Sequence record: OQ992561.1
Reading direction: 5' to 3' (one strand)
Length of the DNA stretch: 64,000 nucleotides
Shown here in pieces: positions 621 to 35,835 of the stretch (position 1 is its first letter; every line of letters begins with the position of its first letter). A model generated the notes under the pieces. That model was not told the origin of the DNA. It searched no databases and saw only the letters and a program-made list of their open reading frames with translations. A program made the translations under genes and the position numbers.

Positions 621-642
621 AGCCTTCCCATTAGGGAAGGCT
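621..642 (+). terminator. Intrinsic terminator
   Basis: AGCCTTCCC-ATTA-GGGAAGGCT then TTATG, 5 nt after stop. Confidence 0.8.
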
Positions 643-673
643 TTATGCCGTGTATTCAAAGCATTTTAAACAG

Positions 674-681
674 TATATTAC
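674..681 (+). promoter_or_regulatory. phiKZ-type early promoter core TATATTAC
   Basis: Exact TATATTAC with TTAA at -8..-5, as at 12591 and 63782; known phiKZ early (vRNAP) promoter motif; precedes small-gene block. Confidence 0.75.
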
Positions 682-739
682 ATTTGTGATATTACTGTAA
701 ACCATATCATACAACTTAATGTAAATAGGGGCTTTTATA

Positions 740-2596: not shown

Positions 2597-3019
2597 ATGT
2601 CAAAAGTAGTATTTCCTAATGGTCTACTAATAGCGCTCATGCAAAACTTCGATCACACTCTCGAATGTTTTGATCATGATGTTAGTGTTTTTAAAAAGGC
2701 ACTCAGTGACCTAGATAATAAAATTAAAGGTGGTATTAAGTCACTTGATAATGATTACCCTAATGCTAAAATTGCATTAGAACGCATTCTTGAAGAACTT
2801 TTTAAAAGAGGATTACATATCCCTGGGCCTTCTGGAAAAGCATTTGTCATTGAAAAAGTTCACATTGTAGATAGCACAGGTGTGGCTAAGGCATACCGTG
2901 TCAGTTACAATGATGAAAAAGCTATGCCTGAATATGTATCAGCCGATAATGTATGGGGTGCACTAATTTCATATCAAAAACGTAGTCGTAGTGCAAATCC
3001 ATTCAAACCAACTGCGTGA
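2597..3019 (+). CDS. Hypothetical protein
   Basis: 140-aa ORF, AGGTGA RBS, operonic spacing. Confidence 0.8.
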   Translation: MSKVVFPNGLLIALMQNFDHTLECFDHDVSVFKKALSDLDNKIKGGIKSLDNDYPNAKIALERILEELFKRGLHIPGPSGKAFVIEKVHIVDSTGVAKAYRVSYNDEKAMPEYVSADNVWGALISYQKRSRSANPFKPTA

Positions 3020-3090
3020 AAAGGATCTGATGGTTAAAGCCATAATCCATTATCGTATTACATAATACCTGCAAAAGAAGGAATAAGTCA

Positions 3091-3342
3091 ATGAGCGAAT
3101 CTAAAGAAGTTATCAACATGGTGGAATGTTTTATCAGTGAATCTTACATGGAGCCAGGTGTTGACCACAATCGTCGGATTTTGATGCGTGAATACGGGAT
3201 CAACCCTAACAGCGGTATACCACTTCGGGGGAACTGGGTTCTGCGTAACATGCTCACTGGGGAATTTATCGACAATGATAAATACCTCAACGATATTGTT
3301 GAACGTAATTCCATCCAATTCGAACGCAATACCTTCGTCTAG
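3091..3342 (+). CDS. Hypothetical protein (paralogue of 4336-4611)
   Basis: 83 aa; REYGINP...RGxWV.R...TG.FID shared with 4336 ORF. Confidence 0.8.
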   Translation: MSESKEVINMVECFISESYMEPGVDHNRRILMREYGINPNSGIPLRGNWVLRNMLTGEFIDNDKYLNDIVERNSIQFERNTFV

Positions 3343-3377
3343 CTATAATTAATCCAAATCTGAAAATAGGTCAAACC

Positions 3378-3761
3378 ATGAACGAACACATTCAAAAGAA
3401 AATCAACCAGGGTACTGGCAGACTGGCTATGTGCAACTTCGACAAAATGAACTATGTTCAGGGTCGTGAGTACTATGCTATCTCAGATAGTGGTTTACTT
3501 GAACAAATCGTTGCTCTATGCGCAGTTCAGTGGCCTCAGGAAATGGCCAACTACCTGCATGATGAAAGCGCTCTGTTCTGGGCTCTTTTCGACCGTGGTA
3601 TCGTAGCTGATGGTAAACCTCGCGCCGACCGTAAAGACTTCATCTACGAACGCCTTGGTTTCATCCACAAGAAGAAGTTCAAAAAATACGGCTTGTCTAT
3701 TCTACGGCGAGCGCGCACCCGCTCGATGGCTAGTTTTGAGAAAGCTCAAGAGACTTGCTGA
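3378..3761 (+). CDS. Hypothetical protein
   Basis: 127-aa ORF, AATAGG RBS. Confidence 0.8.
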   Translation: MNEHIQKKINQGTGRLAMCNFDKMNYVQGREYYAISDSGLLEQIVALCAVQWPQEMANYLHDESALFWALFDRGIVADGKPRADRKDFIYERLGFIHKKKFKKYGLSILRRARTRSMASFEKAQETC

Positions 3762-3796
3762 GCTATGCTGCAACACCAATACGAGGATCGTTAATT

Positions 3797-4294
3797 ATGA
3801 ACCGCATGATTCCTGCAAATGAGCGTGACAGTGAACTCAGTCTCTATGGCTATTTGACCTCTGTTGTAACTGGTGGGGTTGCTTGGGATTATAACCCTAT
3901 CGTTCTGCTGGAGAAGATGTGTAATCGTGATGATGAGGCCATCTGCATGGGTGAACCCAATTACGATCAATTACGTTTGATCGGTGCAAGGGGTATGTTC
4001 GAACAGATCTCTGAAAACATCCTGTCTCGCAATGAACAAATCATGGATGGTGTTCGTGATTTCTTCAAAGATGGTCTCCAGTTGAAAACCAATGTAGATG
4101 ACATGTTGGTGAGACTGAATTATCAAACTGTGCATAACGGGACTGATATGGATGAGGTGATCATGGTAAACTTGTTCAAAAAAATTGATGGTGATTATGT
4201 GGTTGCTCATAAGTGCACATATGACCCTCAAGATTGGAAACATGCGTTATATTACTTCACCAATGCCTCCATGATCAGTCAAAAACAAAAATAA
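3797..4294 (+). CDS. Hypothetical protein
   Basis: Start moved to ATG 3797 (GAGGA RBS). Confidence 0.75.
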   Translation: MNRMIPANERDSELSLYGYLTSVVTGGVAWDYNPIVLLEKMCNRDDEAICMGEPNYDQLRLIGARGMFEQISENILSRNEQIMDGVRDFFKDGLQLKTNVDDMLVRLNYQTVHNGTDMDEVIMVNLFKKIDGDYVVAHKCTYDPQDWKHALYYFTNASMISQKQK

Positions 4295-4335
4295 ATATCA
4301 TGCATATCCCTTCAGGTAATTTTAGAGAGGTTATT

Positions 4336-4611
4336 ATGAGCAATAAAGATGTATCAATGATCCCAGTTTATGAAAATCACTTTGTCACTACTGGTGCTAC
4401 TCCACGACATGAAGCAATTGTGGTATGTCGTGAATATGGTATTAATCCATTAGATGATGCACCATTTCGGGGTTCATGGGTGATGCGCTACCGAGAGACT
4501 GGCAAATTCATTGATTGTTCCAGGGATATTGATGATTTAGCTAAGAAATATAATCTGACCATTCATAAACCAACCATTGAATTATACACCAGCACGTATA
4601 TTGGTCAATAG
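4336..4611 (+). CDS. Hypothetical protein (paralogue of 3091-3342)
   Basis: Start moved to ATG 4336 (GAGG RBS); shared motif with 3091 ORF. Confidence 0.75.
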   Translation: MSNKDVSMIPVYENHFVTTGATPRHEAIVVCREYGINPLDDAPFRGSWVMRYRETGKFIDCSRDIDDLAKKYNLTIHKPTIELYTSTYIGQ

Positions 4612-4615
4612 AAAA

Positions 4616-4640
4616 AAACCACCCTATATAAGGGTGGTTT
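4616..4640 (+). terminator. Intrinsic terminator-like hairpin
   Basis: AAACCACCCT-ATATA-AGGGTGGTTT. Confidence 0.7.
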
Positions 4641-4656
4641 ATAAAAGAGGTGAAAT

Positions 4657-4920
4657 ATGCATAAACTTAATCCTGGTTGTTATCCATTAACTATAAATCC
4701 TAATGGTAAGTTTCTGAATAAAGACGATTTACGGAATCTTCCCAATGGGATTTATGTAACTTCTCCGTTACATGGTCCTAGGGTATATAGCCATGATCGA
4801 CGCGTTATGGTTGATGGTGATTATTGTTATCTAATCACTGCACCGAACATAAAATTCAAGGTAAGTGATTTCTTTAAATATAATGTAGTTTATTATCCGA
4901 GCATTTACCTCAAGAGGTAA
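4657..4920 (+). CDS. Hypothetical protein (paralogue of 5276-5503)
   Basis: 87 aa, GAGGTG RBS; NLPxGxY...PxHGP.....DR motif. Confidence 0.75.
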   Translation: MHKLNPGCYPLTINPNGKFLNKDDLRNLPNGIYVTSPLHGPRVYSHDRRVMVDGDYCYLITAPNIKFKVSDFFKYNVVYYPSIYLKR

Positions 4921-4927
4921 TAAATAA

Positions 4928-5212
4928 ATGGCAAACGAATGCACTCCCGGTGTCTGGGATACACTAGCTGACTCGACAAAAGAAACTGAAAACCTACGTA
5001 TCCGTTCCCAACTCATGCGGGCTCTCACCCGTACTATAAAGGGCTGGGATCTTCCGCAAAAAGACGCTGCTGCTCGCCTACATGTTACGCAACCGAGATT
5101 GAATGATCTTCTCAAAGGCAAGATTGACAAGTTCTCTCTGGACGCCCTGGTAAACCTACTGGACGCGGCTGATCTGACTCTTGAGATATCAGTGATCCCA
5201 CGTGCAGTATAA
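4928..5212 (+). CDS. XRE-family helix-turn-helix protein (HigA-like antitoxin/regulator fold)
   Basis: QKDAAARLHVTQPRLNDLLKGKIDKFSLDALVNLL is a typical XRE/HTH_37 signature; GAGGT RBS. Confidence 0.85.
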   Translation: MANECTPGVWDTLADSTKETENLRIRSQLMRALTRTIKGWDLPQKDAAARLHVTQPRLNDLLKGKIDKFSLDALVNLLDAADLTLEISVIPRAV

Positions 5213-5275
5213 ACCATGGGGACGCAGCTTGATACGGCCACCGGGTGGTTTCATGACAGCAAGGAAATAAAGAAA

Positions 5276-5503
5276 ATGACAACTGATAAAAAGTTTAGCA
5301 TTAAAGAACTCGGATGGGAAAAAGCCACTAATCTACCCGATGGTGAATACTACACTATTCCTAAACATGGACCACAAAACTGGCGGTATGATCGCAAGAT
5401 TATCAAAACCAAGAACAGTGTAAAACTGGTAAATGAACCAGATTATAGCTGGTCAGCCCCATTCTTTTTCGAGGCAAATAACTTGTTAATCGAAGAACCA
5501 TGA
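5276..5503 (+). CDS. Hypothetical protein (paralogue of 4657-4920)
   Basis: Start moved to ATG 5276 (AAGGA RBS). Confidence 0.7.
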   Translation: MTTDKKFSIKELGWEKATNLPDGEYYTIPKHGPQNWRYDRKIIKTKNSVKLVNEPDYSWSAPFFFEANNLLIEEP

Positions 5504-5661
5504 CTATGAAACGATCACCAGGTTATTTTAAAAGAGTAGTAAAAGAACTAACTGAGCGAGAGAATATTATACATCAGAAAGTTCTTAAATACATCAATGA
5601 TAATCCGAATATTTCTTATAAAGAAGCACGTCAGATAGTAACTAAGGAGATTATAAAGTGA
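5500..5661 (+). CDS. 53-aa hypothetical protein (not in ORF track)
   Basis: MTMKRSPGYFKRVVKELTERENIIHQKVLKYINDNPNISYKEARQIVTKEIIK; ATGA overlap upstream and GTGA overlap downstream. Confidence 0.7.
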   Translation: MTMKRSPGYFKRVVKELTERENIIHQKVLKYINDNPNISYKEARQIVTKEIIK

Positions 5662-5870
5662 CTATTTCAATTCCTGCATCAGTTCGTGGTGAGTTTGGAA
5701 TTTATTACAAAAATAATAAGAATCTTCGACTGGGTCAGGCATGGCATAATTACATGCGTCTTGAAAATATCCAAAATGAAATGGATAAAGAATGGGCTGA
5801 TAAACTCTGGAATGCTTCTGATAAAGAAGCAGCTGATATGGTTGATGAAGCCACTAATTGGACTATGTAA
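5658..5870 (+). CDS. Hypothetical protein
   Basis: 70 aa, GTG start, AAGGAG RBS. Confidence 0.75.
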   Translation: MTISIPASVRGEFGIYYKNNKNLRLGQAWHNYMRLENIQNEMDKEWADKLWNASDKEAADMVDEATNWTM

Positions 5871-5909
5871 CTAAACAATATTTACTATAGTAAATAAGGA
5901 GAAATACAA

Positions 5910-6053
5910 ATGACTAATGAAGAAATTATCGTAGATGAAAGTAAATGGGCCGATGACAGCGAGATGGTTGGCTGTAAACCAGTTGATCTGTTTATTGATT
6001 TTTACTGGGTAGAGCCCACTCATCATACTCAAGAAGGAAAAGAGGATAATTAA
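5910..6053 (+). CDS. 47-aa acidic hypothetical protein (not in ORF track)
   Basis: MTNEEIIVDESKWADDSEMVGCKPVDLFIDFYWVEPTHHTQEGKEDN; AAGGAG RBS; stop 1 nt before next ATG. Confidence 0.65.
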   Translation: MTNEEIIVDESKWADDSEMVGCKPVDLFIDFYWVEPTHHTQEGKEDN

Positions 6054-6054
6054 C

Positions 6055-6330
6055 ATGGGTGAATATACACAGAATGGTATTCGTCATTTTCGTCCGGATG
6101 ATACCGAAGATACCTTTTATATCTTGGGTGATTGTTACGTAGTCAATACTATCGCCGATATTGTCGAGATGGCGACTAAGAAATGGGGTGATGGTATTAC
6201 TCTTGATATGATTAATATCAGTACTGAATATATTCATACAAGTTGTCTAGGACATGATGAGTACGACCCTGGCGATTACAGTAATTATCTATGCATCTCA
6301 CGTATTAGGGAAACACCGCTGATTAAATAA
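6055..6330 (+). CDS. Hypothetical protein
   Basis: 91 aa, GAGGA RBS, terminator follows. Confidence 0.8.
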   Translation: MGEYTQNGIRHFRPDDTEDTFYILGDCYVVNTIADIVEMATKKWGDGITLDMINISTEYIHTSCLGHDEYDPGDYSNYLCISRIRETPLIK

Positions 6331-6343
6331 ATTAACGACATAA

Positions 6344-6365
6344 GCCCTCTCCAAAAGGAGAGGGC
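6344..6365 (+). terminator. Intrinsic terminator (conserved GCCCTC family)
   Basis: GCCCTCTCC-AAAA-GGAGAGGGC. Confidence 0.8.
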
Positions 6366-6495
6366 ATTTATTCAGTTAAACGTTTAAGAATAAAAGAATT
6401 AGCCCTACTGTAACAGCAGTAGGGCTATATGCCGTTGAGTAAAAAATACTCAACATTTTCGCCCAAGTGGGCTTGGATTAACAAGAGGAGCAATC

Positions 6496-6801
6496 ATGTT
6501 AATTCCAGTTACCGCTAACAATGTTAGCCCTGACCTGCACAGAATGCAGGAAGTGGGTTTCTTTTTCAAGAGACCCGATGGATCAACCCATAGTATGTCG
6601 GTTGCGAAAACTCAAGCCGATAATGTTATCCAATGTCGAGATCGTAAAGGTAACTTCATTGGTTATTGGGCTGGCCCTACAATAGGATACGTCAACAACG
6701 CAAGTTTAGCCGTATCCATCAACCCCTTCGACAATTTCATAGTAACGGACACTGACATGGATCAGAAGAAGTTCTATGTAACCGAAAGGAGAAGCCTATG
6801 A
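6496..6801 (+). CDS. Hypothetical protein
   Basis: 101 aa, GAGGAG RBS, TGA-TAA double stop. Confidence 0.8.
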   Translation: MLIPVTANNVSPDLHRMQEVGFFFKRPDGSTHSMSVAKTQADNVIQCRDRKGNFIGYWAGPTIGYVNNASLAVSINPFDNFIVTDTDMDQKKFYVTERRSL

Positions 6802-6809
6802 TAAACAAC

Positions 6810-6829
6810 CCCTCTCCTTCAGGAGAGGG
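6810..6829 (+). terminator. Intrinsic terminator
   Basis: CCCTCTCC-TTCA-GGAGAGGG followed by T-rich tract. Confidence 0.8.
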
Positions 6830-6854
6830 ACTTATTTGAATTCTTTTTTTTTGT

Positions 6855-7440
6855 TTAAGTGAGAGCCGCCCGCTAAAGCGGCTCCCAAGTGGAGTTAAGT
6901 CTCCCGCTAAAGAGACACTCCAGTATACATGGGGTAGCGACTCCTCATGTAGATATCCTAATTAATCTCTTTAGCTAGTAATCAATACCAGTTATCACTC
7001 GTTGATAATTGATTTGTTTATTAACTAATTTGACTTAATCAGAATAATCAATACATATTGTTAATAACCTAGTATATTATTACCAGTATCATTGAGTAAT
7101 ACTGGTAATTAAATTTTACTCATGATTATTACCTAATGTGGAACTGAGGAATCGGATCGCCCCGTAGGGGCTTTTATTTCATAATAAACTATACCGAAGG
7201 TATATCCTTATTCTAATAATAAACAATATTAGCATTATTCTAATAGCGTTAGCTAATACATACTGTCTCCCTAAAAGGAGACACAGTATAGATTATATTT
7301 TTTTAATTAAAAATAATAAGTCTAGAGATAGACTTTCTTTATGCCTTTAATACCTTCTAATTTGCTCTATAATCGATTTTATTCGTTATTCACTAGCATA
7401 TTAGCCATACGACATAAAAGCCCTCCTATGAGGGCTTAAA
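6855..7440. other. Long non-coding region packed with inverted repeats (candidate structured RNA or replication origin)
   Basis: No ORF of 60 aa or more; about ten discrete hairpins read by hand; lies between convergent operons next to the DnaB operon. Confidence 0.6.
7418..7437 (-). terminator. Terminator for minus-strand gene 7487-7855
   Basis: AAGCCCTC-CTAT-GAGGGCTT with CATAA flank. Confidence 0.7.
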
Positions 7441-7486
7441 TGCTTTATTGATTATTAGACGAATGGATTAATCAGAATTAAATATA

Positions 7487-7855
7487 TTACATTAATTCCT
7501 TTACATCATCTGGAATAGATTCACACCGATCTAAATCCCAATAGATGTGTGTATAGTGATCCTGGTTTACGATGCTGATAAAATCCCCATTAGGATCGGG
7601 TAATGGTTTACGGATCACATCGACATAGATAGTGTAGTACAGATATAGGTCACTGATAAGTTCATCGATATTTAGGTTATTACCTTCTGCATATTTACCA
7701 TATTTAAAATAATGGGCTTCTTCTGCTACAGCATAACGGATTTTATCGTAATTTTGTGATGCGGCATATACACGTGCAAATAGGGGTCGATTAAACTTTC
7801 TACATTCACTAATATTCTTTCTTAAAGTATTTACTAAATTATCAATTGCACTCAT
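7487..7855 (-). CDS. Hypothetical protein
   Basis: 122-aa ORF, AATAGG RBS on minus strand. Confidence 0.8.
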   Translation of the reverse strand: MSAIDNLVNTLRKNISECRKFNRPLFARVYAASQNYDKIRYAVAEEAHYFKYGKYAEGNNLNIDELISDLYLYYTIYVDVIRKPLPDPNGDFISIVNQDHYTHIYWDLDRCESIPDDVKELM

Positions 7856-7879
7856 TTAGATTACCTATTAAATTATAGT

Positions 7880-7899
7880 GCTCTCCCCGAAGGGAGAGC
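7880..7899 (-). terminator. Terminator after DnaB helicase
   Basis: On minus strand GCTCTCCC-TTCG-GGGAGAGC, 10 nt after helicase stop. Confidence 0.75.
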
Positions 7900-7908
7900 T
7901 TTATGTTG

Positions 7909-9456
7909 TTAATATCCCCAGTCATCTCCACCAGTTGCTTGCATATTACTAAGACTTGGTACGAAATCCATGTAATTGTTTTCTTCTTTATCGATATCCC
8001 ATCTAATGCCACCGATACGGTCTGGATCAAACGGCATAACAAAATAGTGATGCTTACTATCACTTACAACGTTACGGTGTTTACCACGTTGTACAGTTAG
8101 ATAATACTTACCACTTACTTTAACAATGTGGAAGAAGAATTCCAGATCAGGTTCTTGTCCAAGTCGACGACAACCATCATAGTAACCTTTGTTAGCAACT
8201 TGTTTAACAAAGTCTTCTGGTGGGATATTATCCCTGATTAGTTCTAATGCCTGAGAACTTAACTGATGCGGACTAAAGAATGTGATACCACGTGGTGCAG
8301 TATAGTTACGCATTCGCCTAAATAGGAGACGAACGTCATCACCTGCTACACTGGTCACTAATCCAGTTTTAGGCAACATGTTTAGATAATCTACGCAGAG
8401 ATATTGTAGTTCATAACCACGTGCTTGATATGTATCTAGGTAGTTAACTAAACCAGCAATCGTAAATTCAGTTGGGTCAAAACGATACATTACTGGTTCA
8501 AAACCATTTTCACGGAGACGAGCTGATACATATTCAGCTGCTTCAGCTTTACTAATAGAACTACGATCTACCTTGATACCTGTTTCATTTTCGTAAATAT
8601 ACTCATAAATGAAAATAAGGTTATCCGGAATCTCATTCTCAAGAGTAATAAACATTACTAATGGTTTCTTATTGATATCACGCATGTATGGTTTATTAAA
8701 TAGACACACATGGCAAAATAGACTCATAGAAACGCCAGATTTATATTGATGTTGTAGGCCACCACCGATAATAAATTCACCACGTTTTAATGCACCCAGA
8801 TCACCAAGCATCCTGTTAAAACCTTTCCATCCAGTTCGGAAAGCACCATTTGGTGAAAGAATGGTTTTAGCTTCTTCGAAGAAGCCTTCAATAGAGTCTA
8901 GATTACCAAAATCAAGTGCACCCATTTCAGCTGGGTGTTTCTCTTCAGCACGCGCGCGAATATATGGGTCAGCTCTGGTTGCCATTTCATTAATGATTGC
9001 CGGAATATCAGCAGAGCCCCTATTGAAAAGAATTTTTGATGAACATTCTTTTACAATAGCTTTTACCTTCTCATCAGCTAAGTAGCTATTTAGATCACGA
9101 CGATATGAAGTTACACGCATGGCCAATGCCATGCCATTTGGAAATTCTTCTTCTACCGCATTTTTAACAGCATCGTATAGATAACTTTCTTCACGACAAC
9201 ATACTTGTAGTGATTGTAATACCTGTTGGGTAGCTGGGAAATATGCTTTCTGTTTCTTATTTAGATCCACTAGTAGATTACGAAGATCTAAAAATGTTTG
9301 TCGACCATGATCTACATCTAATGTACCACCCTTATCATTTAGAGTATCAAGAATCTCGGTAACCAATTCATTGGATGGTTCCACAGGAGAATCTTCTCGA
9401 TTTTCTAAACATAATAGAGTGATACATGAAACGAGTAATTGTTTTGGACTTGACAT
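7909..9456 (-). CDS. gp118: DnaB-like replicative helicase
   Basis: GWKGFNRMLG..GALKRGE, VMFITLE, CVDYL, HQLS and VQRGKHR motifs of SF4 helicases; position next to capsid operon. Confidence 0.88.
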   Translation of the reverse strand: MSSPKQLLVSCITLLCLENREDSPVEPSNELVTEILDTLNDKGGTLDVDHGRQTFLDLRNLLVDLNKKQKAYFPATQQVLQSLQVCCREESYLYDAVKNAVEEEFPNGMALAMRVTSYRRDLNSYLADEKVKAIVKECSSKILFNRGSADIPAIINEMATRADPYIRARAEEKHPAEMGALDFGNLDSIEGFFEEAKTILSPNGAFRTGWKGFNRMLGDLGALKRGEFIIGGGLQHQYKSGVSMSLFCHVCLFNKPYMRDINKKPLVMFITLENEIPDNLIFIYEYIYENETGIKVDRSSISKAEAAEYVSARLRENGFEPVMYRFDPTEFTIAGLVNYLDTYQARGYELQYLCVDYLNMLPKTGLVTSVAGDDVRLLFRRMRNYTAPRGITFFSPHQLSSQALELIRDNIPPEDFVKQVANKGYYDGCRRLGQEPDLEFFFHIVKVSGKYYLTVQRGKHRNVVSDSKHHYFVMPFDPDRIGGIRWDIDKEENNYMDFVPSLSNMQATGGDDWGY

Positions 9457-10201: not shown

Positions 10202-12445
10202 ATGAGCGTACATGCCCTAAGAGAACTGTTTAAACACAAAGGCGAAAAGAATTACGAAGTCTTCTCAATGGAAGATTTCATTGGCCGCCTAGAAAGTGAA
10301 ATTGGTCTAAATGACAGCGTTGTTAGTCAAGGTCGTTCCCTTATTAGCAGCATTTCACATGAAAACTTCGGTACCGTGCAAGCTACCGACATTCAAGATG
10401 CCGCTGCAATTTATAACAAAATGCAAATGCTCGTTAACGACTATGGTTTCGAACGAGTAAGTTCCAGTGATCCTCAAGTACGTGCTCGTGAAGAACGTGT
10501 CCGTGAGAACCAAATCACTGCTGCTACCATGGCTGCTATCGCCTGTGCTGATGAAACTAAATATATCCGTGCACTACGTGGTATTACCAAAGCTAAAGCT
10601 TCTAATGAAGATCATGTTAAGGTTGTACAGCATCAGTTCAATGGCCCTGCTGGTGGCATTCAAGTATTCGAAAATGGTGTTGGCCTAGAGAACTATAACG
10701 AGAAGTCACAGCGTGATTTCCGTGTTGTAACTATTGGTTATAACCTAGCTGCTAGCCGTCAGGATGAATTCGCTGAGCGTATCTATCCGACCACCGTTAT
10801 CAACCCGATTGAAGGTGGTGTTGTTCAGGTTCTTCCTTACATCGCTGTAATGAAAGACGTTTACCACGAAGTATCCGGCGTTAAGATGGATAACGAAGAA
10901 GTGAACATGGTAGAAGCCTATCGTGATCCTTCCATCCTCGACGACGAAAGCATTGCACTAATTCCTGCCCTAGATCCGGCTGGTTCCAATGCTGACTTCT
11001 TCGTAGACCCGGCTCTTGTTCCTCCGTACACCATCAAGAACGAGCAGAACCTAACTATCACTACTGCTCCGCTAAAAGCGAACGTACGTCTTGATCTAAT
11101 GGGTAACTCCAATGCTAACCTACTCATTCAGCGTGGCATGCTTGAAGTTTCTGACACCATTGATCCGGCTGGTCGTCTAAAGAACCTATTCGTTCTACTC
11201 GGCGGTAAAGTTGTTAAGTTCAAGGTTGACCGTCTACCTCGCGCTGTGTTCCAGCCCGATCTAGTTGGTGATACCCGGAACGCAGTTATCCGTTTCGATA
11301 GCGATGACCTTGTTGTTAGTGGCGATACCACTTTCATCGACGGTTCAGCTGATGGCGTTATTAACGACCTTAAGACTGCTAAACTAAGCCTACGTCTAAG
11401 CGTTGGTTTCGGCGGTACTATCAGCCTATCCAAAGGCGATTCTAAGTTTGGTGCTACCGACACTTACGTCGATAAAGTTCTAAACGAAGATGGTCAAGTA
11501 ATGGATAATGCTGACCCGGCTGTTAAAGCTATTCTAGATCAGCTAACTGACCTAGCTGTTATCGGTTTCGAACTAGATACTCGCTTCACCAACACCAACC
11601 GTCGTCAGCGTGGTCACCTACTACAGACCCGTGCACTACAGTTCCGTCATCCGATCCCGATGCACGCTCCTGTAACTCTACCGATGGACACCATGACCGA
11701 TGAAGGTCCGGGTGAGGTTGTTAAAGCTCTAACCGTTAACACCAACATCCGTAACAGCAACAACGCTGTTAAGCGCATGCTTAACTACCTTGCTCAACTA
11801 CGTGAAGTTGTACACAATGGTTACAACCGTCCGAAGTTTGGTATCATCGAAGGTGCACTATCCGCTGTAATGCGTCCGACCTATCGTTACAAAGAACTAG
11901 ATCTTGAGAAAGTCATCGACACCATCAAGTCTAAAGATCGTTGGGACGACGTTTGCGCTGCGATCCTAAACTGTGTTAAAGCTGAGCTATTCCCGGCTCA
12001 CCGTGATTCCAACATTGAAGCTGCCTTCCGTGTTATCTCCGGTAACCAGGATGAAACTCCGATGTATCTCTTCTGCTCCGACAAAGAGATTGCTAACTAT
12101 CTAATGACTAAAGGTGACGACCGTACTCTAGGTGCTTATCTCAAGTACGATATCGTTTCCACCAACAACCAGCTATTCGATGGTAAGCTAGTTGTAATTC
12201 CGACCCGCGCAGTACAACAAGAAAACGACATCCTCTCCTGGGGTCAGTTCTTCTACGTATCTACTGTTATCGCTGACCTACCGATCACCCGTGGTGGTCA
12301 CCAGGTTACTCGCGAAATCGCGGCCATTCCGTTCAACCTACACGTCAACAACATTCCGTTCGCACTAGAGTTCAAGATCACTGGCTTCCAGAAAGTCATG
12401 GGCGAAACTCAGTTCAACGGTAAGCTTGCTGATCTTAAGCCGTGA
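10202..12445 (+). CDS. gp120: Major capsid protein (precursor)
   Basis: 747 aa, strong codon bias (CTA/CGT/GGT/GCT); GLE at residues 161-163 fits the known prohead-protease cleavage after E163; TGA stop. Confidence 0.95.
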   Translation: MSVHALRELFKHKGEKNYEVFSMEDFIGRLESEIGLNDSVVSQGRSLISSISHENFGTVQATDIQDAAAIYNKMQMLVNDYGFERVSSSDPQVRAREERVRENQITAATMAAIACADETKYIRALRGITKAKASNEDHVKVVQHQFNGPAGGIQVFENGVGLENYNEKSQRDFRVVTIGYNLAASRQDEFAERIYPTTVINPIEGGVVQVLPYIAVMKDVYHEVSGVKMDNEEVNMVEAYRDPSILDDESIALIPALDPAGSNADFFVDPALVPPYTIKNEQNLTITTAPLKANVRLDLMGNSNANLLIQRGMLEVSDTIDPAGRLKNLFVLLGGKVVKFKVDRLPRAVFQPDLVGDTRNAVIRFDSDDLVVSGDTTFIDGSADGVINDLKTAKLSLRLSVGFGGTISLSKGDSKFGATDTYVDKVLNEDGQVMDNADPAVKAILDQLTDLAVIGFELDTRFTNTNRRQRGHLLQTRALQFRHPIPMHAPVTLPMDTMTDEGPGEVVKALTVNTNIRNSNNAVKRMLNYLAQLREVVHNGYNRPKFGIIEGALSAVMRPTYRYKELDLEKVIDTIKSKDRWDDVCAAILNCVKAELFPAHRDSNIEAAFRVISGNQDETPMYLFCSDKEIANYLMTKGDDRTLGAYLKYDIVSTNNQLFDGKLVVIPTRAVQQENDILSWGQFFYVSTVIADLPITRGGHQVTREIAAIPFNLHVNNIPFALEFKITGFQKVMGETQFNGKLADLKP

Positions 12446-18752: not shown

Positions 18753-19196
18753 TTAACTACTTTCAAATTCAAGAGTTACTGGTATTGTTGGTATCCACGA
18801 CAAGTTATTAAAGTATGGATGTATCGTAACCGTATTCCCAGTAATAGGTTGCGGTTGTATCTCATCTATAATAAATGGAATACCGTAAACATCTCTTAAT
18901 TTTTCAGCTACTTCTAAATTATCAGTATAGTCAGTTGGTTTACCCGGTACTTTTATACCAAGACAGTACTCTGGTAAAGAGCGTCTATTAAAGTAAATAA
19001 CTGTCTCACCTTTAAAATAAAGTGAACTGGTCTTCGCTCTCATTGTTGTTTTGGCATTTGTACCAGTTGCTAAGAATGTATCAGTCCCTATAAATTCAAC
19101 ATCATCAACAGTTAAATCCCTAGGCTTACCATTATTATCTTTAGGTTTATTAGCCACATTCCAAGCAGCTACTAATTCAGCTCTTGTATCAGCCAT
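18753..19196 (-). CDS. Virion structural protein (paralogue family with YxR[RL] motif)
   Basis: 147 aa; IYFNRRSL motif; gp126 by counting. Confidence 0.7.
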   Translation of the reverse strand: MADTRAELVAAWNVANKPKDNNGKPRDLTVDDVEFIGTDTFLATGTNAKTTMRAKTSSLYFKGETVIYFNRRSLPEYCLGIKVPGKPTDYTDNLEVAEKLRDVYGIPFIIDEIQPQPITGNTVTIHPYFNNLSWIPTIPVTLEFESS

Positions 19197-19204
19197 TACA
19201 CACC

Positions 19205-20080
<876 letters not shown>

Positions 20081-20087
20081 TCGCTCC

Positions 20088-22268
<2,181 letters not shown>

Positions 22269-22288
22269 TTACTCACTTTAAAATTTAG

Positions 22289-24979
<2,691 letters not shown>

Positions 24980-24999
24980 TAATTTCTAAACAACATAAT

Positions 25000-25020
25000 G
25001 CCCTCCCGTAATGGGAGGGC
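25000..25020. terminator. Bidirectional terminator
   Basis: GCCCTCCC-GTAAT-GGGAGGGC with CATAA/TTATG flanks between convergent genes. Confidence 0.85.
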
Positions 25021-25028
25021 TTATGACG

Positions 25029-26312
<1,284 letters not shown>

Positions 26313-26409
26313 CTATTAGTCTCCATGGAATGATTGGACAATCCTATGTGAATTTCACATCATTACGCTAACAAATTGCGCAATAGCGTTTTATTAAAGG
26401 AGGGCAACC

Positions 26410-28725
26410 ATGGCCCACGGTGAAACTGGGTTATATCCATTCGACCCCAATGGAACAAATCCCCAGAACTTTATTAAAGGTGAGCGCCAAACTCTCCAGG
26501 TACCAGATGGTGATGATTATTATTTCATTATACCATTTGCTGCACCTTTCTTTGTAGATTCATTACGACTATTTAACCCACTGACCAATCAGACTTATGT
26601 AGAAGGTGTTGATTACCTTATTGGGCATTGGTTTATTGAAGCTATGGAATCGATAGGTAGACCTATCGCTGGATCTATACGTATCATGAAGCGTTCGATA
26701 AACGCTATGATTGGTATGGATTATCGTACAATAGGTGGGCAATGGGGATTTAGTAATCAACAGATCCTGGCTGAGCTTGCACGCAAACAGTATAACCCCT
26801 TGATTCGGTCATGGGGTGCAATTGGTCCATTACCTGCTTCTTTCCCACCTTTAGAACACAATCAACCTATTGATTCATTAGTAGGTAGTAAAGAGATTCT
26901 TGAAGGTATCGAAGGTATTATAGAAGCTATCCGTGCTGCGGCTGCCGGTACAACTGACCAACATATTCGTGATTATAATAACCCACACAGGGTAACTAAA
27001 GCACAAGTTGGCTTGGCACTAGTTCCAAACTATGCGATGGCAACTGATCAACAGCATTTAGATGCTAATCGTAATGATCTATTTACGAACCCACGTGGTA
27101 CATTAGCATTAGTCAATAAGTTTGCCGTAAATCCACTTAATGCTCACATAGCGGCTAGGGGTAACGTACACGGTCTAACAGCAGCTGATATTAATTTAGG
27201 TAATGTTCCTAACTATCCAGCTGCAACACCAACTACCGCGGTAGATGTAACTAATGATTCGGTATTATTAACACCTTATACTGCATCTATTCTCTATAGT
27301 CAGATTGGTGATGCTTCTAGAATTAATGAACTAGAAGAGAAACTTGCATCACATATTAAAAACTTTAATAACCCACACGTTGTAACTGCCGACCAGGTTA
27401 ATGCATATACTAAAACACAAGTTGATCAACTACTGGCGGGACTAGGTGGTGGTGATGCTTCTACCTTTGGTGGATTAACACCTGAGCAATGGAAAGATGA
27501 ATTCCCATCATTCGGTGATATTGAAAGGATGGCAGCCGGCTATAACGCTAACTGGGATGATGCACAATTAAAGATAGATACATTGCCAGTTATTGTAGAT
27601 GATACCAGTGAATATGACCGAATGGAATTAATTCAAGGTGTCATGGCAGGTTTCCATGCTTATGCTGGATTTAATAGTTGGTGGGATTGTACAATTGTCA
27701 GAGATGACCATATAGTTCATCCTAAATCGCCAGCTAACCCTTATGTAGTTATGCCAGAGCGCTTAGGCTATGCTCAGGAATCTTGGGTATCTCACCGATA
27801 TGGTCAGTATTGGGTAGAAAATGGTGTAGCCAAGTCAGCATGTATCGATGAAACTAAAGTCGATGAGATGATACCAATTCCAGCAGAATGGACTGCACCT
27901 ATAGATGGGAATATCCCTTCAAGTATCTGGGCAAATAAAACATCTCTGTATATGTTAACAGGTAAGTTTATCTTTAGTTCAACAGGTGAATCAGCTATCT
28001 TTGAGCACCAAGATCTTTATCGCTGTGTTAAAGGTGGTGCATCTGAACTATTAGTACCTGCTGCTAATAAACCATGGGCTTTATTTACCAATACTGAAGA
28101 TACCTATCCTGGTGAAATGACAGTTGTTGTAAACATAGGTCCAGCTAGCAGTGCTGACTATGTATATACAGCTTATGGTATCCCAAGCTTCGTTAGTGCT
28201 TTTAATGATTTTGTTAACAACACAATTAAACCATTGAATCATGTTATTGATTCAATGTCAATTGGTTGCACCCACATCATCATGCATTCAATAGACCCAT
28301 TAGTTGCCTCTGAAGATTACACATCTGAATCTAGTAAAGTACATGTCATGGAAATCATCCGCAATGGTAATGATACATCCTTTACGGTTATCTCGCCATT
28401 ATGGTTCGATGGACGTGGTAACGATGTAACTGCTAATGTATATAGTAACCCAATTGGTGGTGTATCAGGATTATATACACATTACACTGTGATGTATGGT
28501 GATGGCCAAATCGCTTTCTTCGGAAATAACGATAATGGACAATGTGACGTGGATGATCATGCTGGACCATATATTCAATTGGCAGCAGGGCATAATTTCA
28601 CTGTGACAGTAAATACTTTGAATCAAGTCATGTTTTGGGGAGATTCACCTGATAACTCCTTATTATGGAATGGCAGGGGTACACGTGTGAAACATATTGA
28701 ACCAACTCCACCCACTGGTCCATAA
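26410..28725 (+). CDS. gp131: Baseplate/tail-fibre protein with C-terminal beta-propeller
   Basis: 771 aa; HxxxxxNPHxVTxxQVGL repeats; C-terminal RCC1-like GNNDNGQ...AAGHNFT...FWGD. Confidence 0.85.
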   Translation: MAHGETGLYPFDPNGTNPQNFIKGERQTLQVPDGDDYYFIIPFAAPFFVDSLRLFNPLTNQTYVEGVDYLIGHWFIEAMESIGRPIAGSIRIMKRSINAMIGMDYRTIGGQWGFSNQQILAELARKQYNPLIRSWGAIGPLPASFPPLEHNQPIDSLVGSKEILEGIEGIIEAIRAAAAGTTDQHIRDYNNPHRVTKAQVGLALVPNYAMATDQQHLDANRNDLFTNPRGTLALVNKFAVNPLNAHIAARGNVHGLTAADINLGNVPNYPAATPTTAVDVTNDSVLLTPYTASILYSQIGDASRINELEEKLASHIKNFNNPHVVTADQVNAYTKTQVDQLLAGLGGGDASTFGGLTPEQWKDEFPSFGDIERMAAGYNANWDDAQLKIDTLPVIVDDTSEYDRMELIQGVMAGFHAYAGFNSWWDCTIVRDDHIVHPKSPANPYVVMPERLGYAQESWVSHRYGQYWVENGVAKSACIDETKVDEMIPIPAEWTAPIDGNIPSSIWANKTSLYMLTGKFIFSSTGESAIFEHQDLYRCVKGGASELLVPAANKPWALFTNTEDTYPGEMTVVVNIGPASSADYVYTAYGIPSFVSAFNDFVNNTIKPLNHVIDSMSIGCTHIIMHSIDPLVASEDYTSESSKVHVMEIIRNGNDTSFTVISPLWFDGRGNDVTANVYSNPIGGVSGLYTHYTVMYGDGQIAFFGNNDNGQCDVDDHAGPYIQLAAGHNFTVTVNTLNQVMFWGDSPDNSLLWNGRGTRVKHIEPTPPTGP

Positions 28726-28737
28726 GAGGATTTAAAA

Positions 28738-29070
28738 ATGGCAGAAGTTACACGTCAAGAGATGGATGCTCAAATAAATGCTTCTATTAGTAATCAAGGC
28801 TTATTTACTAAGGCAGTCCTTAATAAATTCATAGCTGTTATTAATAGGATCAATGGGCACATTGCAGCTAGAGGTAACCCACATAATCTGCAACCATCAG
28901 ATATTGGTCTTGGTAATGTGGCTAACTATCGTCCAGCTACTAAGAAGCGTGCACAAGAAGGTTTCAATAACACTACGTACATGACTCCTAAACGGACAGA
29001 TGATTATAATCGAGTGCACATATACGGTCCACTTGCGAAATTATTTAATGACGCAGCAGACCGTCTATAA
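28738..29070 (+). CDS. Small tail-fibre-associated protein
   Basis: 110 aa with one HIAARGNPH..GLGNVAN repeat. Confidence 0.8.
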   Translation: MAEVTRQEMDAQINASISNQGLFTKAVLNKFIAVINRINGHIAARGNPHNLQPSDIGLGNVANYRPATKKRAQEGFNNTTYMTPKRTDDYNRVHIYGPLAKLFNDAADRL

Positions 29071-29086
29071 ACATCTGACCCGGCAT

Positions 29087-29115
29087 AAGAGACACAGCTT
29101 TTGGCTGTGTCTCTT
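29087..29115 (+). terminator. Intrinsic terminator
   Basis: AAGAGACACAGC-TTTTG-GCTGTGTCTCTT plus T-tract. Confidence 0.85.
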
Positions 29116-29144
29116 TTTGCTGTTTCAGTTAAAAGGTATTTCTT

Positions 29145-30533
29145 ATGTATAATCCTATTTTACAATTACCATTTGATCCATTAGGTACAAATCCAGATTG
29201 TTTCATTGGTAGTGAACCACATACTCTAGTTCAGTATCAAGGGTTCGACTATAGAATCATCAAATTATATCATGGTGGATTCTATACAAAAGGGTTAGAA
29301 GTTTATGATGGTAAATATAATCGTTTAGTTAAAGATATCGATTACATTGTTACTTATTATCATAAAGATGCTAGTGCATATGTTGGTCAAGAAATATGCT
29401 CAGCAATTGTTTTCTTAAAAACACCTAGTACACCAATAGTGTATACTTCAGCTCACATGGTTGGTGGTGACCTAGCTTTTAGTTTCACAGTTATTGATGA
29501 TTATATTAACTGGTGGAAAACAAATGGTAAACCAAAGCCAAAAGACCTTGACTACACTGGTAATGAACCATACTGGAAAGATGGTGAGTTAGTTGGTGAA
29601 CGATGGCATCTTGATACATATCAGCCTTACAATAATGAGATGGAGTGGATAACACAAGCACTCATGGCTGGCGATACAAATGGTGAAGATAAATATCGTA
29701 GTAAAGTTAAAGAGATCTATGATGAATTCTTAAAGAAATTTAATGATAGGCTAGAAAAACATATTCAAGATAAAGCCAATCCGCACAAGATCACTCCAAC
29801 TAATGTAGAACTAGGTTTAGTTAATAACTTCCCATTGGCTACTCCAGCCATTGCTCAGCTAGGTCAATCTAATGCGCATTATCTGACACCACAATTAGCA
29901 TATGGTGTATTAGATGAAATAGCTATAAAACCACTCAATGCTCACATAGCTCGTCGAGATAATCCACATAAAGTCAAAAATACACATGTACAGTCATATT
30001 TGAAAAGTGATTTCGATACACGGGTCACTGGTAAGTATTTAAAGACTGATACGGTGGCTAATACCAATATGGTTTATTATAAACCTAAAGGGCAACCTAC
30101 TGCTACTTTAATGGGTTATAGCGATCTTATTTGGTGGATGCGCAAGAACTTTGATACCGATGTGAACTTTACAGCTGGTGATGGCCAGAGTAATGTCATC
30201 AATATAAATCGGATTGGTTCTGGTACAATGGGGCAATGGAAAGCACCGCTCCGTGGGAATGGTATATTTACACATTTTGATCAATTAGCCACAGAGTATT
30301 CATTTCCGGTTAAGTTAAAGTTTTATGCACTAGGATTACAACCATCCGTGCAGGCAGCATTAGATTTCTGTAGAACTAACTTTACTAATCTAGATACATG
30401 GCCTATTGGATCTACTGTATTCTTTACTATTAAAGAACAGAAAATCCAGGCAGCTGGTAACGGATTGATTTTCGTTGATTATACTCCTAACTACGTGTGT
30501 TTCCGTTCACAAGGTGGCTGGGTAATTCCATAA
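29145..30533 (+). CDS. Tail-fibre/baseplate paralogue
   Basis: 462 aa; LPFDP.G N-terminus and NPH repeats. Confidence 0.8.
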   Translation: MYNPILQLPFDPLGTNPDCFIGSEPHTLVQYQGFDYRIIKLYHGGFYTKGLEVYDGKYNRLVKDIDYIVTYYHKDASAYVGQEICSAIVFLKTPSTPIVYTSAHMVGGDLAFSFTVIDDYINWWKTNGKPKPKDLDYTGNEPYWKDGELVGERWHLDTYQPYNNEMEWITQALMAGDTNGEDKYRSKVKEIYDEFLKKFNDRLEKHIQDKANPHKITPTNVELGLVNNFPLATPAIAQLGQSNAHYLTPQLAYGVLDEIAIKPLNAHIARRDNPHKVKNTHVQSYLKSDFDTRVTGKYLKTDTVANTNMVYYKPKGQPTATLMGYSDLIWWMRKNFDTDVNFTAGDGQSNVININRIGSGTMGQWKAPLRGNGIFTHFDQLATEYSFPVKLKFYALGLQPSVQAALDFCRTNFTNLDTWPIGSTVFFTIKEQKIQAAGNGLIFVDYTPNYVCFRSQGGWVIP

Positions 30534-30544
30534 GGATAGTTTAG

Positions 30545-31918
30545 ATGAATCCATTACTTTTACCTCTTCCATTTGATGAAACTGGAGAGAGTTATAGTAA
30601 CCGAACAAAGGGTGAATACCATTCACTAGCAAAACAGAAAGGATTCCCCTATCGCATCATTGTGATGGATAAGGGTTACTTTTATACTAAAGGAATGGTT
30701 ATCAGAGATGGTAGGCAAAATGAGTTAAATCCAGAGATGGATTATCAGTGCACTGGTATTAATCCAGAGGTAATCGAGAAGACTGGACTTGAAGCTTGTT
30801 CAGTAATTGTCATTACAAAACAAGATGTCCACGAGGATATTTACATTGATGCTCAGATGTGCGGTGGTATATACTGTAACCTTGCGCCTTCCATTTCTGA
30901 ACATGCTAATGCTCTTTTAAATAATACCCGTAAACCACATTGGTCTAATATCTTAGATATTCCTGACCAATTCAAACCTAATGGACATATGCATGCCTAT
31001 TGGGAACTTTATGGTTTTACACCTAGAGTTGTTAAGTTAAAAGAAATAACTGACTTATTAAAGAAAAGCTCATCTGACTCATATGACTCCATTTTAGATG
31101 AGTTTAAATATCAATTAAGTCTAATAGAAGCTGATCTGAATACAATTGAAGCACGGCTTACTACACACATCAATGATACCACCACCAACCCACACCAAAC
31201 ACGTAAAGGGCAGGTGGCATTAGGTAATGTTTATAACGCTGGTATTGCAACTGAAACACAAGCCAAACAACCAAATGGCGCTATCATGAATGTCTATGCT
31301 ACGCCATGGTCAATGAAGTTATCTGTTGATACCAATTATACAGTACAGTATTTAGCCCACGTTAACGATATTACCACTAACCCACACAGGGTAACAGCTG
31401 AACAACTAAATACATATACTGTTACCCAAGCTAATATTTTACTAAATCAAAAATTAGATAAAGGTAAAACAGCTAATACATCTAAACTATTATTTGGTCA
31501 AGATGTTTATAGCATGGGTGAAACGGTACGTGCTAAAATGCCTTTAAGTGTATTGACGACTGGTCGGCTAGCACCTGGCCGGATCGGTAACTCAGCGACT
31601 TGGCCAGGTCGTGATTGGACATTAATGCCTAATGGCCAATGGACACACTTTGGATTTATATTCAATCGCTTCCAGAAAACAGGGACGATGGTTCACTGGA
31701 ACAATACTAACTTCAAGTCTATCCAAGAAGCAATTGCTTTCCATAACACATACTTCTCAGATCCTGACCAATGGTGGCCTGGTTCACTAGCTATCTGCCA
31801 TTACGAGCAAGAGTTCGTTATTGGGCATGGTAATGGTACAACAGCTACTTCCTATAGGAATACTTTATTCTTACGTAAAGTGGGATCAACGTGGACCAAT
31901 ATAGGGGAACCGGCATAA
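30545..31918 (+). CDS. Tail-fibre/baseplate paralogue
   Basis: 457 aa; LPFDETG N-terminus and NPH repeats. Confidence 0.8.
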   Translation: MNPLLLPLPFDETGESYSNRTKGEYHSLAKQKGFPYRIIVMDKGYFYTKGMVIRDGRQNELNPEMDYQCTGINPEVIEKTGLEACSVIVITKQDVHEDIYIDAQMCGGIYCNLAPSISEHANALLNNTRKPHWSNILDIPDQFKPNGHMHAYWELYGFTPRVVKLKEITDLLKKSSSDSYDSILDEFKYQLSLIEADLNTIEARLTTHINDTTTNPHQTRKGQVALGNVYNAGIATETQAKQPNGAIMNVYATPWSMKLSVDTNYTVQYLAHVNDITTNPHRVTAEQLNTYTVTQANILLNQKLDKGKTANTSKLLFGQDVYSMGETVRAKMPLSVLTTGRLAPGRIGNSATWPGRDWTLMPNGQWTHFGFIFNRFQKTGTMVHWNNTNFKSIQEAIAFHNTYFSDPDQWWPGSLAICHYEQEFVIGHGNGTTATSYRNTLFLRKVGSTWTNIGEPA

Positions 31919-33309: not shown

Positions 33310-33911
33310 TGAACAATCCGTTATCACTCCAAGAACTATCTTTAGCTACTGCACCTACTGAAGATAAAGTAAAAGTACTATTAATGTTTAACCGTACATC
33401 TGAGGTATTCCTACAAAGCGTGGGTTATCTACCTTTAGATGCATTTGATGCTAAGTCACGTGAGCACACTATTTTTGTTGAAGCAGAAATGGGTACTTAT
33501 GATGTGGTCGTAAGTAATACACCTGGTAAACAACCTACACTTTCTGATTGGAAGATTGTTCCTAAAGAAGAAGCACCACAAGTGATTACTGAAGATCACT
33601 TAAATAGTAAAGTAGCTTACAAAATTACTGAACGCTATCCAGTGACTGAGCAAATCAATATCCTTGCACGTGCAATTAAACAGCTAGCTGAAAAATATGG
33701 TCAAGAGTTAGATGAACTAGAAGAAATGCTTGATTATATTGATCTTGTTAAACGAACTAATCGCGCGCATAAGGAGGCCCTAATTGAGAGCCCAGACGTT
33801 ATCTATAAATCCAGGGAAGATCTCGACGCTGAGAAAGCACATCGATATGCAGGTGGCCTGCATGAGCTTATCGGCCCACGAAAGATCGACCAAGGACGTG
33901 TTTTCAGCTGA
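33309..33911 (+). CDS. Probable tail-fibre assembly/chaperone-like protein
   Basis: Start moved to ATG 33309 (TAATG); KITERYPVTEQINIL motif; follows fibre genes. Confidence 0.55.
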   Translation: MNNPLSLQELSLATAPTEDKVKVLLMFNRTSEVFLQSVGYLPLDAFDAKSREHTIFVEAEMGTYDVVVSNTPGKQPTLSDWKIVPKEEAPQVITEDHLNSKVAYKITERYPVTEQINILARAIKQLAEKYGQELDELEEMLDYIDLVKRTNRAHKEALIESPDVIYKSREDLDAEKAHRYAGGLHELIGPRKIDQGRVFS

Positions 33912-34344: not shown

Positions 34345-34352
34345 GGTACAAC

Positions 34353-34841: not shown

Positions 34842-34850
34842 CAGCATAAA

Positions 34851-34870
34851 TCCCCTCCATGTGGAGGGGA
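34851..34870 (+). terminator. Terminator-like hairpin
   Basis: TCCCCTCC-ATGT-GGAGGGGA with CATAA flank. Confidence 0.75.
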
Positions 34871-34906
34871 ACTCTTACAAATTTACTCAATAGTACAGTG
34901 TACTAA

Positions 34907-35833
<927 letters not shown>

Positions 35834-35835
35834 AT

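Follow-up and report, generated by a model that had tools for sequence, protein, structure and literature searches.

The hairpin-rich spacer beside the helicase operon of Pseudomonas phage ANB1 is probably a composite of a published small RNA gene, a control palindrome, stacked stop signals and a cross-genus block

The ORF-free spacer and its genomic context

Beside the DnaB-like helicase genes of Pseudomonas phage ANB1 (OQ992561, Phikzvirus) lies a long gap that is devoid of open reading frames (ORFs) and crowded with hairpins, and the question raised by this locus is what such a gap encodes. The original prediction, made from the letters alone, proposed one or more structured non-coding RNAs (ncRNAs), among them a plus-strand RNA that could end at a terminator at 7159, or a replication origin. 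The window that was analyzed is a stretch of 64,000 nucleotides in which the window position equals the ANB1 position minus 62,000, and the phiKZ (NC_004629) position is obtained by adding 107,868 to the window position (valid for window 6846–7297). The 5-kb stretch around the gap is 100% identical to ANB1 and 96–98% identical to 46 other phiKZ-like genomes, and BLAST aligned phiKZ and ANB1 with 97% identity across the entire spacer.

With the ORF cut-off set at 50, 60 or 80 aa, the stretch 6802–7486 (685 bp) is the longest ORF-free gap of the window, and the runners-up measure 196, 196 and 488 bp, respectively. The claim that this is the longest such stretch was therefore borne out, with 685 bp compared with 196 bp for the next. 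Two small ORFs that are annotated within it in ANB1 (6889–6978 and 7341–7439) are without support. On the left side, plus-strand genes stop at 6801, and on the right side the order is as follows:

7487–7855, minus strand: homolog of PHIKZ117.4, the right flank of the spacer
7909–9456, minus strand: DnaB-like helicase, two genes from the ORF-free stretch
Beyond the helicase, plus strand: gp119, then the major capsid gene

Since the plus-strand genes end at 6801 and the genes to the right lie on the minus strand, the gap is a spacer between two converging transcription blocks. It separates the plus-strand gp110–117 genes from the minus-strand gp117.4–helicase operon.

The stems listed in the original prediction are all present (6863–6884, 6890–6922, 6926–6951, 6992–7008, 7079–7089/7099–7109, 7159–7171, 7190–7204, 7261–7288 and 7318–7335), as are the two copies of TAATCAATAC at 6979 and 7045. 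The intervening sequences are indeed very AT-rich, with a GC content of 0.26, the value being 0.52 in 6857–6955, where the GC-rich stems cluster, and 0.38 in the whole window. A terminator scan of 6400–7900 returned seven terminator-like hairpins (1.0 ± 1.1 in shuffles). When compared with dinucleotide shuffles, region 6857–7054 folds with z-scores of −5.5 (minus strand) and −5.8 (plus strand), and region 7055–7410 with z-scores of −3.8 (minus strand) and −3.2 (plus strand); no shuffle of either region was equally stable. Rfam returned no matches at gathering scores in the whole window, and permissive thresholds applied to 6780–7500 gave a best E-value of 0.85, with every score far under threshold. 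The search for tRNAs and tmRNA found none. At 7449–7484, phiKZ and six of the eight relatives compared carry ~230 extra bp with the small gene PHIKZ117.3, an insert that ANB1, SL2 and T2P lack.

In our assessment, the spacer is probably a composite of a published ncRNA gene, a likely control palindrome, stacked stop signals and a block that is conserved across genera. Its main feature, the small RNA, is already known from phiKZ publications, and there is accordingly little new in the finding.

A published small RNA on the minus strand

The left third of the spacer is the ortholog of an already published phiKZ small RNA, and it is read from the opposite strand. A structured-ncRNA gene is thus present as predicted, and what differs is the strand, which is minus, and the limits, which enclose only the following segment:

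6857–7054, minus strand: structured ncRNA of 198 nt, ortholog of the phiKZ TU089/'5'UTR_p40' ncRNA (orthology, published ends, probe and RNA contigs)

In a Grad-seq analysis, Gerovac et al. 2021 (mBio, PMC8545117) described this ncRNA as "the first 180 nt of the 5' UTR of p40", and their Northern blot detected RNAs of ~180 nt and ~880 nt. The probe, JVO-18831, has the plus-strand sequence of 6988–7016 with one mismatch, so the RNA that it detected is a minus-strand RNA. The supplement of Putzeys et al. (bioRxiv 10.1101/2023.10.13.562163) lists start P060 at 114922 (minus strand), classed as "middle promoter" and also present in Wicke 2021, terminator T053 at 114725 (minus strand), the 197-nt unit TU089 and the 715-nt unit TU088, which ends at T051 (114207, minus strand). 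P060, T053 and T051 map to window positions 7054, 6857 and ~6337, and the minus strand of 6863–6922 corresponds to the T053 string given there. The start at 7054 was also reached independently, from the TATG motif and a public RNA contig (run X12) that ends exactly there.

In public runs, ONT RNA contigs span 6357 to ~7054, with a word depth of 19,000–37,000 at 6870–7040, 3,000–8,000 to the left of 6870, and zero at 7098–7382. By their mismatches, the contigs place all of this transcript evidence in phiKZ-like sequence, not in ANB1. The Logan contigs are strandless, and the strand assignment rests on the published tables and the probe. RNA coverage and Northern blotting, which had been named as checks, accordingly show a minus-strand RNA within 6857–7054 in phiKZ, and this result does not extend to 7055–7457, for which no start or stop is listed.

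In an alignment of nine genomes, 6846–7054 contains 7 variable sites in 209 nt. ANB1 and phiKZ differ within the ncRNA at 6916, 6924, 6990 and 7046, and one of these differences restores a G–C pair in the 6898–6916 stem. The RNA (MFE −67.9 kcal/mol, z-score −5.5) folds into a long AT-rich hairpin, the apex of which is the TTATCA/TGATAA stem at 6992–7008, followed by three GC-rich hairpins (6926–6951, 6890–6922 and 6863–6884), so that four of the predicted stems lie inside it. Hairpins 6890–6922 and 6863–6884 have identical UUUAGCGG loops, and the loop of 6926–6951 holds the complement CGCUA; because of this complementarity, loop–loop contacts between them are possible in the folded RNA. The phage genome shows no enrichment of the 8-mer complementary to the UUUAGCGG loops.

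The stop at 6857 lacks a U-tract, and the published table does not call it intrinsic. The UUUAGCGG-loop hairpins may represent a special class of stop hairpin. Genome-wide, the 8-nt loop is found on the minus strand in three hairpins, i.e. the twin hairpins of the ncRNA and one at phiKZ ~12020–12050, and published minus-strand stops are located right after them (T053 after the twins and T003 after the third). PA7 has four copies of CCGCTAAA on the plus strand of its genome, and three of them are inside these hairpin loops. At the place equivalent to the ncRNA, PhiPA3 has unrelated sequence, with a 22-codon minus-strand ORF behind GAGGAG and then a strong hairpin.

In the mechanism that we propose, the phage RNA polymerase would start at the G of TATG (G7054). 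Some transcripts would end just past the twin hairpins, at ~6857, and give rise to the stable small RNA, and others would continue, for a total of 715 nt, to the bidirectional terminator near 6337. A reader working from sequence only was thus able to pick out a real ncRNA gene.

The promoter and the 11-bp palindrome

Two elements are located immediately upstream of the ncRNA start:

7055–7104, minus strand: ncRNA promoter (phiKZ P060, class 'middle'; Putzeys supplement and sequence)
7079–7109, no strand: perfect 11-bp inverted repeat with a 9-bp spacer, centered ~40 bp upstream of the ncRNA start

On the minus strand, TATG occupies 7057–7054, with the start at G7054, and TACT occupies 7074–7071 (−20 to −17). 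The 50 nt upstream of the start correspond to the published P060 string except for one substitution relative to phiKZ. The TATG start motif of the phiKZ non-virion polymerase, in which G is +1, and the middle-promoter motif have been described (Yakunina 2015, Wicke 2021), and P060 is published as a middle-class promoter that is active by 10 min after infection.

The 11-bp palindrome occurs at a single locus in the PA7 genome and is absent from PA1C. In the nine-genome alignment, its spacer (7090–7098) reads CATTGAGTA in ANB1, phiKZ, T2P and KTN4, and the exact reverse complement of CATTGAGTA in PA7, SL2, FBPa36, 30-1 and PA02, with the arms intact. On sequence grounds, such a flipped loop is the signature expected of a small hairpin-mediated inversion in DNA, and it is the sole hint of DNA-level hairpin activity at the locus. 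The palindrome is therefore a candidate operator or a candidate extruding DNA hairpin. Its uniqueness in the genome and its position ~40 bp upstream of the ncRNA start suit an operator, and it is probably a control site for the ncRNA start.

Antisense RNA or mRNA leader

Beyond 6857, the longer transcript enters a region for which annotations disagree: phiKZ RefSeq shows minus-strand ORFs 117.1 and 117.2 there, and most annotators call a plus-strand ORF, 6496–6801. This plus-strand ORF (101 aa, phrog_25431) is at least 96% identical over its full length in 47 of 47 Phikzvirus records, and AGAGGAG is located 5 nt before its ATG. The long read-through form of the ncRNA would be a cis-antisense RNA to ORF 6496–6801 that covers its ribosome-binding site, and the 197-nt species would be the stable, prematurely terminated 5′ domain of this antisense RNA. 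This read-through form, TU088, and the late transcript from P059 (114456, minus strand) would then both be antisense to the ORF and its ribosome-binding site. The antisense position over an intact ORF with a strong ribosome-binding site seems to be new.

A different account, which is the published one (Gerovac 2021, PMC8545117; Putzeys 2024, PMC10914365), is that PHIKZ_p40/p39 have a genuine mRNA and that the small RNA is no more than its prematurely terminated leader, an attenuator that sets protein amounts and has no antisense role. In line with it, TU088 spans both annotated ORFs, p40 and p39, and the longer form sediments like an mRNA, near the 30S fractions (Gerovac 2021). However, the coding targets of such a leader, p39 and p40, look weak: PHIKZ117.1 (p39) has an in-frame stop codon in ANB1, inspection of the sequence found no Shine-Dalgarno motif upstream of either p39 or p40 (117.1 and 117.2), and the overlapping plus-strand ORF is full-length in 47 genomes, with a strong ribosome-binding site. 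That the RNA is a leader and nothing else is thus a tentative alternative. Substitution patterns decide only weakly between the two, because the wobble positions of the two frames coincide; of the seven changes that separate ORF 6496–6801 of ANB1 from that of phiKZ, three are silent. Against an antisense role, neither ORF 6496–6801 nor ORF024 has a plus-strand start in the long-read tables, so the sense transcript of ORF 6496–6801 on which an antisense RNA would act is a putative one. When weighed against the leader account, an antisense role of the ncRNA appears about equally probable.

Pfam returned nothing for ORF 6496–6801 or gp117.4, and PHROGs placed both only in families of unknown function. 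The region upstream of the ORF (6385–6495) is paralogous to that of ORF024 (phiKZ 12.1 kb), with compensatory changes in the hairpins. The shared layout consists of a hairpin, TATATGYCGT, a second hairpin, TTTTCGCCCAA.TGGGC and a ribosome-binding site. At ORF024, phiKZ RefSeq likewise shows small minus-strand ORFs, 024.1 and 024.2, instead of the plus-strand ORF, and the hairpin that forms the published minus-strand stop T003 has a UUUAGCGG loop. There is no protein-level similarity between ORF 6496–6801 and ORF024 of PA1C, only the upstream regions being related. Together, the ncRNA and the sister locus at ORF024 suggest antisense units that overlie small genes left out of the phiKZ reference annotation.

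Stop signals and RNA in the right half

Terminator-like hairpins were found on both strands of the spacer:

6810–6853, plus strand: intrinsic terminator after ORF 6496–6801 (stem 6810–6829, T-rich tail and T-run to 6853; terminator scan)
7159–7179, plus strand: GCCCC-GTA-GGGGC hairpin followed by TTTTATTT, called intrinsic by the scan
7261–7304, plus strand: hairpin 7261–7288 with a T-run at 7298–7304, terminator-like
7283–7264, minus strand: the 7261–7288 hairpin read in the other direction, with tail GTATGTATTA and TATG at 7262–7259, called by the terminator scan
7335–7318, minus strand: AAGTCTA/TAGACTT hairpin with a U-rich tail (sequence and folds)
7435–7411, minus strand: helicase operon terminator (stem 7420–7435, tail TTTTATGTC, putative RNA end 7411)

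The combination of a GC-rich stem and a U-tract that defines an intrinsic terminator is present at 6810–6829 (plus), 7159–7171 (plus), 7283–7264 (minus) and 7435–7420 (minus). In public RNA runs X1 and X5, sequencing-adapter junctions are located at 7411, and we infer that they mark the RNA 3′ end of the helicase operon, for which hairpin 7318–7335 is likely a back-up terminator. A similar terminator with a T-run precedes the conserved block (see below) in PA1C. The plus-strand stops at 6810–6853, 7159–7179 and 7261–7304 and the minus-strand stops at 7435–7411, 7335–7318 and 7283–7264 would thus form a stack that would hold the two converging blocks apart.

For a plus-strand RNA ending at the 7159 terminator, as originally proposed, the published ONT-cappable-seq tables give neither a start nor a stop, although RNAs shorter than ~80 nt escape this method. 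More generally, the published long-read tables are empty of starts and stops for both strands of phiKZ 114923–115326 (window 7055–7457). Two Illumina RNA runs yielded contigs over 7055–7304, of which that of X1 spans the whole spacer and that of X5 ends exactly at 7304. Some RNA is therefore made there, on a strand that the contigs do not give.

A block conserved across three genera

The right half contains a block that is shared by Phikzvirus, Pawinskivirus and PhiPA3 and is composed of the following parts:

7112–7224, plus strand: conserved block, ~110 bp
7112–7120: AATTTTACT
7144–7149: GAGGAA
7159–7171: hairpin 1
7172–7179: TTTTATTT
7182–7189: TAATAAAC
7190–7204: hairpin 2 (TATACC-GAA-GGTATA)
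7205–7214: TCCTTATTCT, with a degenerate second copy of this motif at 7232–7241

In a sensitive BLAST search of the spacer outside Phikzvirus, only 7166–7224 matched, with ~90% identity in eight records. Carriers of the block include PA1C, PS119XW and HPP-Temi (Pawinskivirus), and PhiPA3 (Miltoncavirus) has it too. It is always located downstream of the gp117.4/helicase module, and the genes on its other side differ. The neighboring gp117.4 protein is only 26–33% identical across genera, and the helicase is 63% identical. Within Phikzvirus, 7129–7223 is the least variable part of the spacer, with one variable site among nine genomes. In phiKZ the stem of hairpin 1 reads GCCCC/GGGGC, and the other two genera have CCTCC/GGAGG; for hairpin 2, phiKZ and PA1C share ATACC/GGTAT, and PhiPA3 has GAGTTAC/GTAACTC. 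Both hairpins thus keep their structure despite different stem sequences. Between them, TTTTATTT..TAATAAAC is invariant in the three genera, and after them TCCTTATTCY is present in all three genera in two to three copies that are 22–27 bp apart and separated by unrelated spacers.

The block is single-copy in the genome. In a whole-genome BLAST of PA7 against PA1C, the other short non-coding matches of at least 89% identity are tRNAs, standard terminators and early promoters, and the block (57 nt, 89%) is the only match of that length and identity outside those classes. A pattern scan for relatives of the block found only PhiPA3 in IMG/VR, and in JGI metagenomes it returned five unrelated chance matches, all of them terminator tails. 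The next nearest helicase relatives, Psa21 and Viktualia, have no equivalent spacer; in Psa21, the helicase of which is 59% identical, the corresponding place holds only 54 bp. As judged from sequence comparison, the cross-genus conservation of the block seems to be new, and a block maintained around the 7159 terminator would have to serve some further function beyond stopping transcription.

The PA1C module that resembles gp15–24 (PA1C 104–112 kb, PA7 14.9–23.6 kb) has a DNA identity of 87–88%, compared with ~65–72% elsewhere. This identity points to a recent exchange between genera. Because the exchanged module ends 70 bp from the block, the identity of the block could partly reflect recent exchange and not constraint.

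The invariant TTTTATTT..TAATAAAC was considered as an early promoter and rejected, since the real early consensus, derived from the genome, differs. This consensus of the virion RNA polymerase, ..TTCAAA..TTTAAACAGTATATTAC, was obtained from ~11 same-strand copies in PA7 and is also conserved in PA1C; we take this strand-specific repeat to represent the early-promoter consensus of phiKZ. It is present in full at window ~630–690 (plus strand). In the spacer, the only match to the consensus is ACAGTATA at 7283, which lacks the flanking parts. Only a single similar copy of TTTTATTT..TAATAAAC was found, in front of the gp15 homolog of PA1C and phiKZ: TTTTATTTAGTAATAAAC recurs exactly at PA1C 107431–107448, 27 nt upstream of the gp15-like gene, and a similar sequence precedes the phiKZ-type gp15 homolog.

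One explanation for the block is that it is a small-RNA locus and that the right half produces one or two short plus-strand RNAs. The first, of ~40 nt and GGA-rich, would start after the TTTTACT motif and end at the 7159–7179 terminator, and the second, with the UCCUUAUUCY repeats, would extend from ~7190 as far as the T-run at 7304. Such RNAs would fit the canonical plus-strand hairpin with its U-tract, the invariance of TTTTATTT in three genera and the stems that differ in sequence yet still pair. The promoter-like AATTTTACT resembles the middle-promoter motif, the X5 contig stops exactly at 7304, the X1 contig covers the whole spacer, and RNAs under ~80 nt are missed by ONT-cappable-seq. 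However, neither strand of phiKZ 114923–115326 has a start or a stop in the published tables, ONT depth is zero at 7098–7382, the contigs are strandless, and the distance from the promoter-like motif to the possible start varies between genera. We regard these short RNAs as unlikely. The plus strand of 7138–7156 contains three GGA motifs, and the loop of hairpin 1 contains GGA in PA1C and PhiPA3 but GUA in phiKZ; the likeness of the block to small RNAs that titrate CsrA/RsmA is a resemblance only.

The transcript-poor right half (7055–7410) could instead act at the DNA level, as a replication origin or a protein-binding region, with the TCCTTATTCY repeats serving as binding sites and the AT-rich DNA as the place of strand opening. 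The GC content of 26%, the lack of long transcripts, the direct repeats kept at 22–27 bp spacing in three genera with unrelated spacers between them, and the place beside the helicase module, kept while the left neighbors differ, are all consistent with such a site, and the flipped loop of the palindrome suggests hairpin extrusion or template switching at the DNA level. On the other hand, we found no evidence for the replication origin of the original prediction. The cumulative GC skew, which is dominated by gene orientation, rises steadily and monotonically through the locus, with no turn or extreme, and there are only two to three short direct repeats, the second copy being degenerate in Phikzvirus. 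Furthermore, CCTTATTC shows no genome-wide enrichment, Psa21 has only its 54-bp spacer here, and a literature search found no described replication origin for these phages. A DNA-level site is therefore the least probable of these explanations, and we consider it very unlikely.

The two halves of the locus can also be read jointly. The block would be a functional element of its own in three genera of P. aeruginosa jumbo phages, either a very short host-directed RNA or a site where a replication-linked protein binds or initiates, and at the same time the ncRNA would be the 5′ domain of an antisense RNA that silences ORF 6496–6801, with a sister at ORF024 that has a UUUAGCGG-loop stop hairpin. 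As a whole, this joint reading is conceivable, and we hold it with some doubt.

Significance and comparison with known systems

Jumbo phages are of interest for therapy and because of their protein nucleus, and, to our knowledge, a role has been assigned to few of the small RNAs of phages. The antisense units and the conserved block could thus matter to researchers of jumbo phages.

Origins of the T4 oriF/oriG type consist of a middle promoter and a downstream unwinding element. Similarly, the ANB1 spacer has a middle-promoter-like motif followed by AT-rich DNA near replication genes, a likeness seen in the sequence alone, but in ANB1 a strong terminator is located between the motif and the AT-rich DNA.

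The closest counterpart is phiKZ TU089 itself, with which the ANB1 locus shares the start motif, the 3′ end at the twin hairpins, the probe site and the neighbors. The ncRNA is of the same type as 5′-leader small RNAs that arise by premature termination, such as RhlS of P. aeruginosa and the other 16 phiKZ candidates (Putzeys 2024, PMC10914365), in that it has its own start, stops ahead of the first annotated ORF and exceeds the read-through RNA in abundance. Unlike them, the ANB1 locus has doubtful downstream ORFs, a stop without a U-tract and a read-through RNA that is antisense to an intact gene on the opposite strand. The six bidirectional terminator regions of phiKZ (Putzeys 2024, PMC10914365) likewise lie between convergent genes and have hairpins in two directions with TTAT.. 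tails. However, their stop sites are 23–183 nt apart, whereas the ANB1 spacer, at 685 bp, is far longer and, unlike those regions, holds a whole transcription unit and a conserved block.
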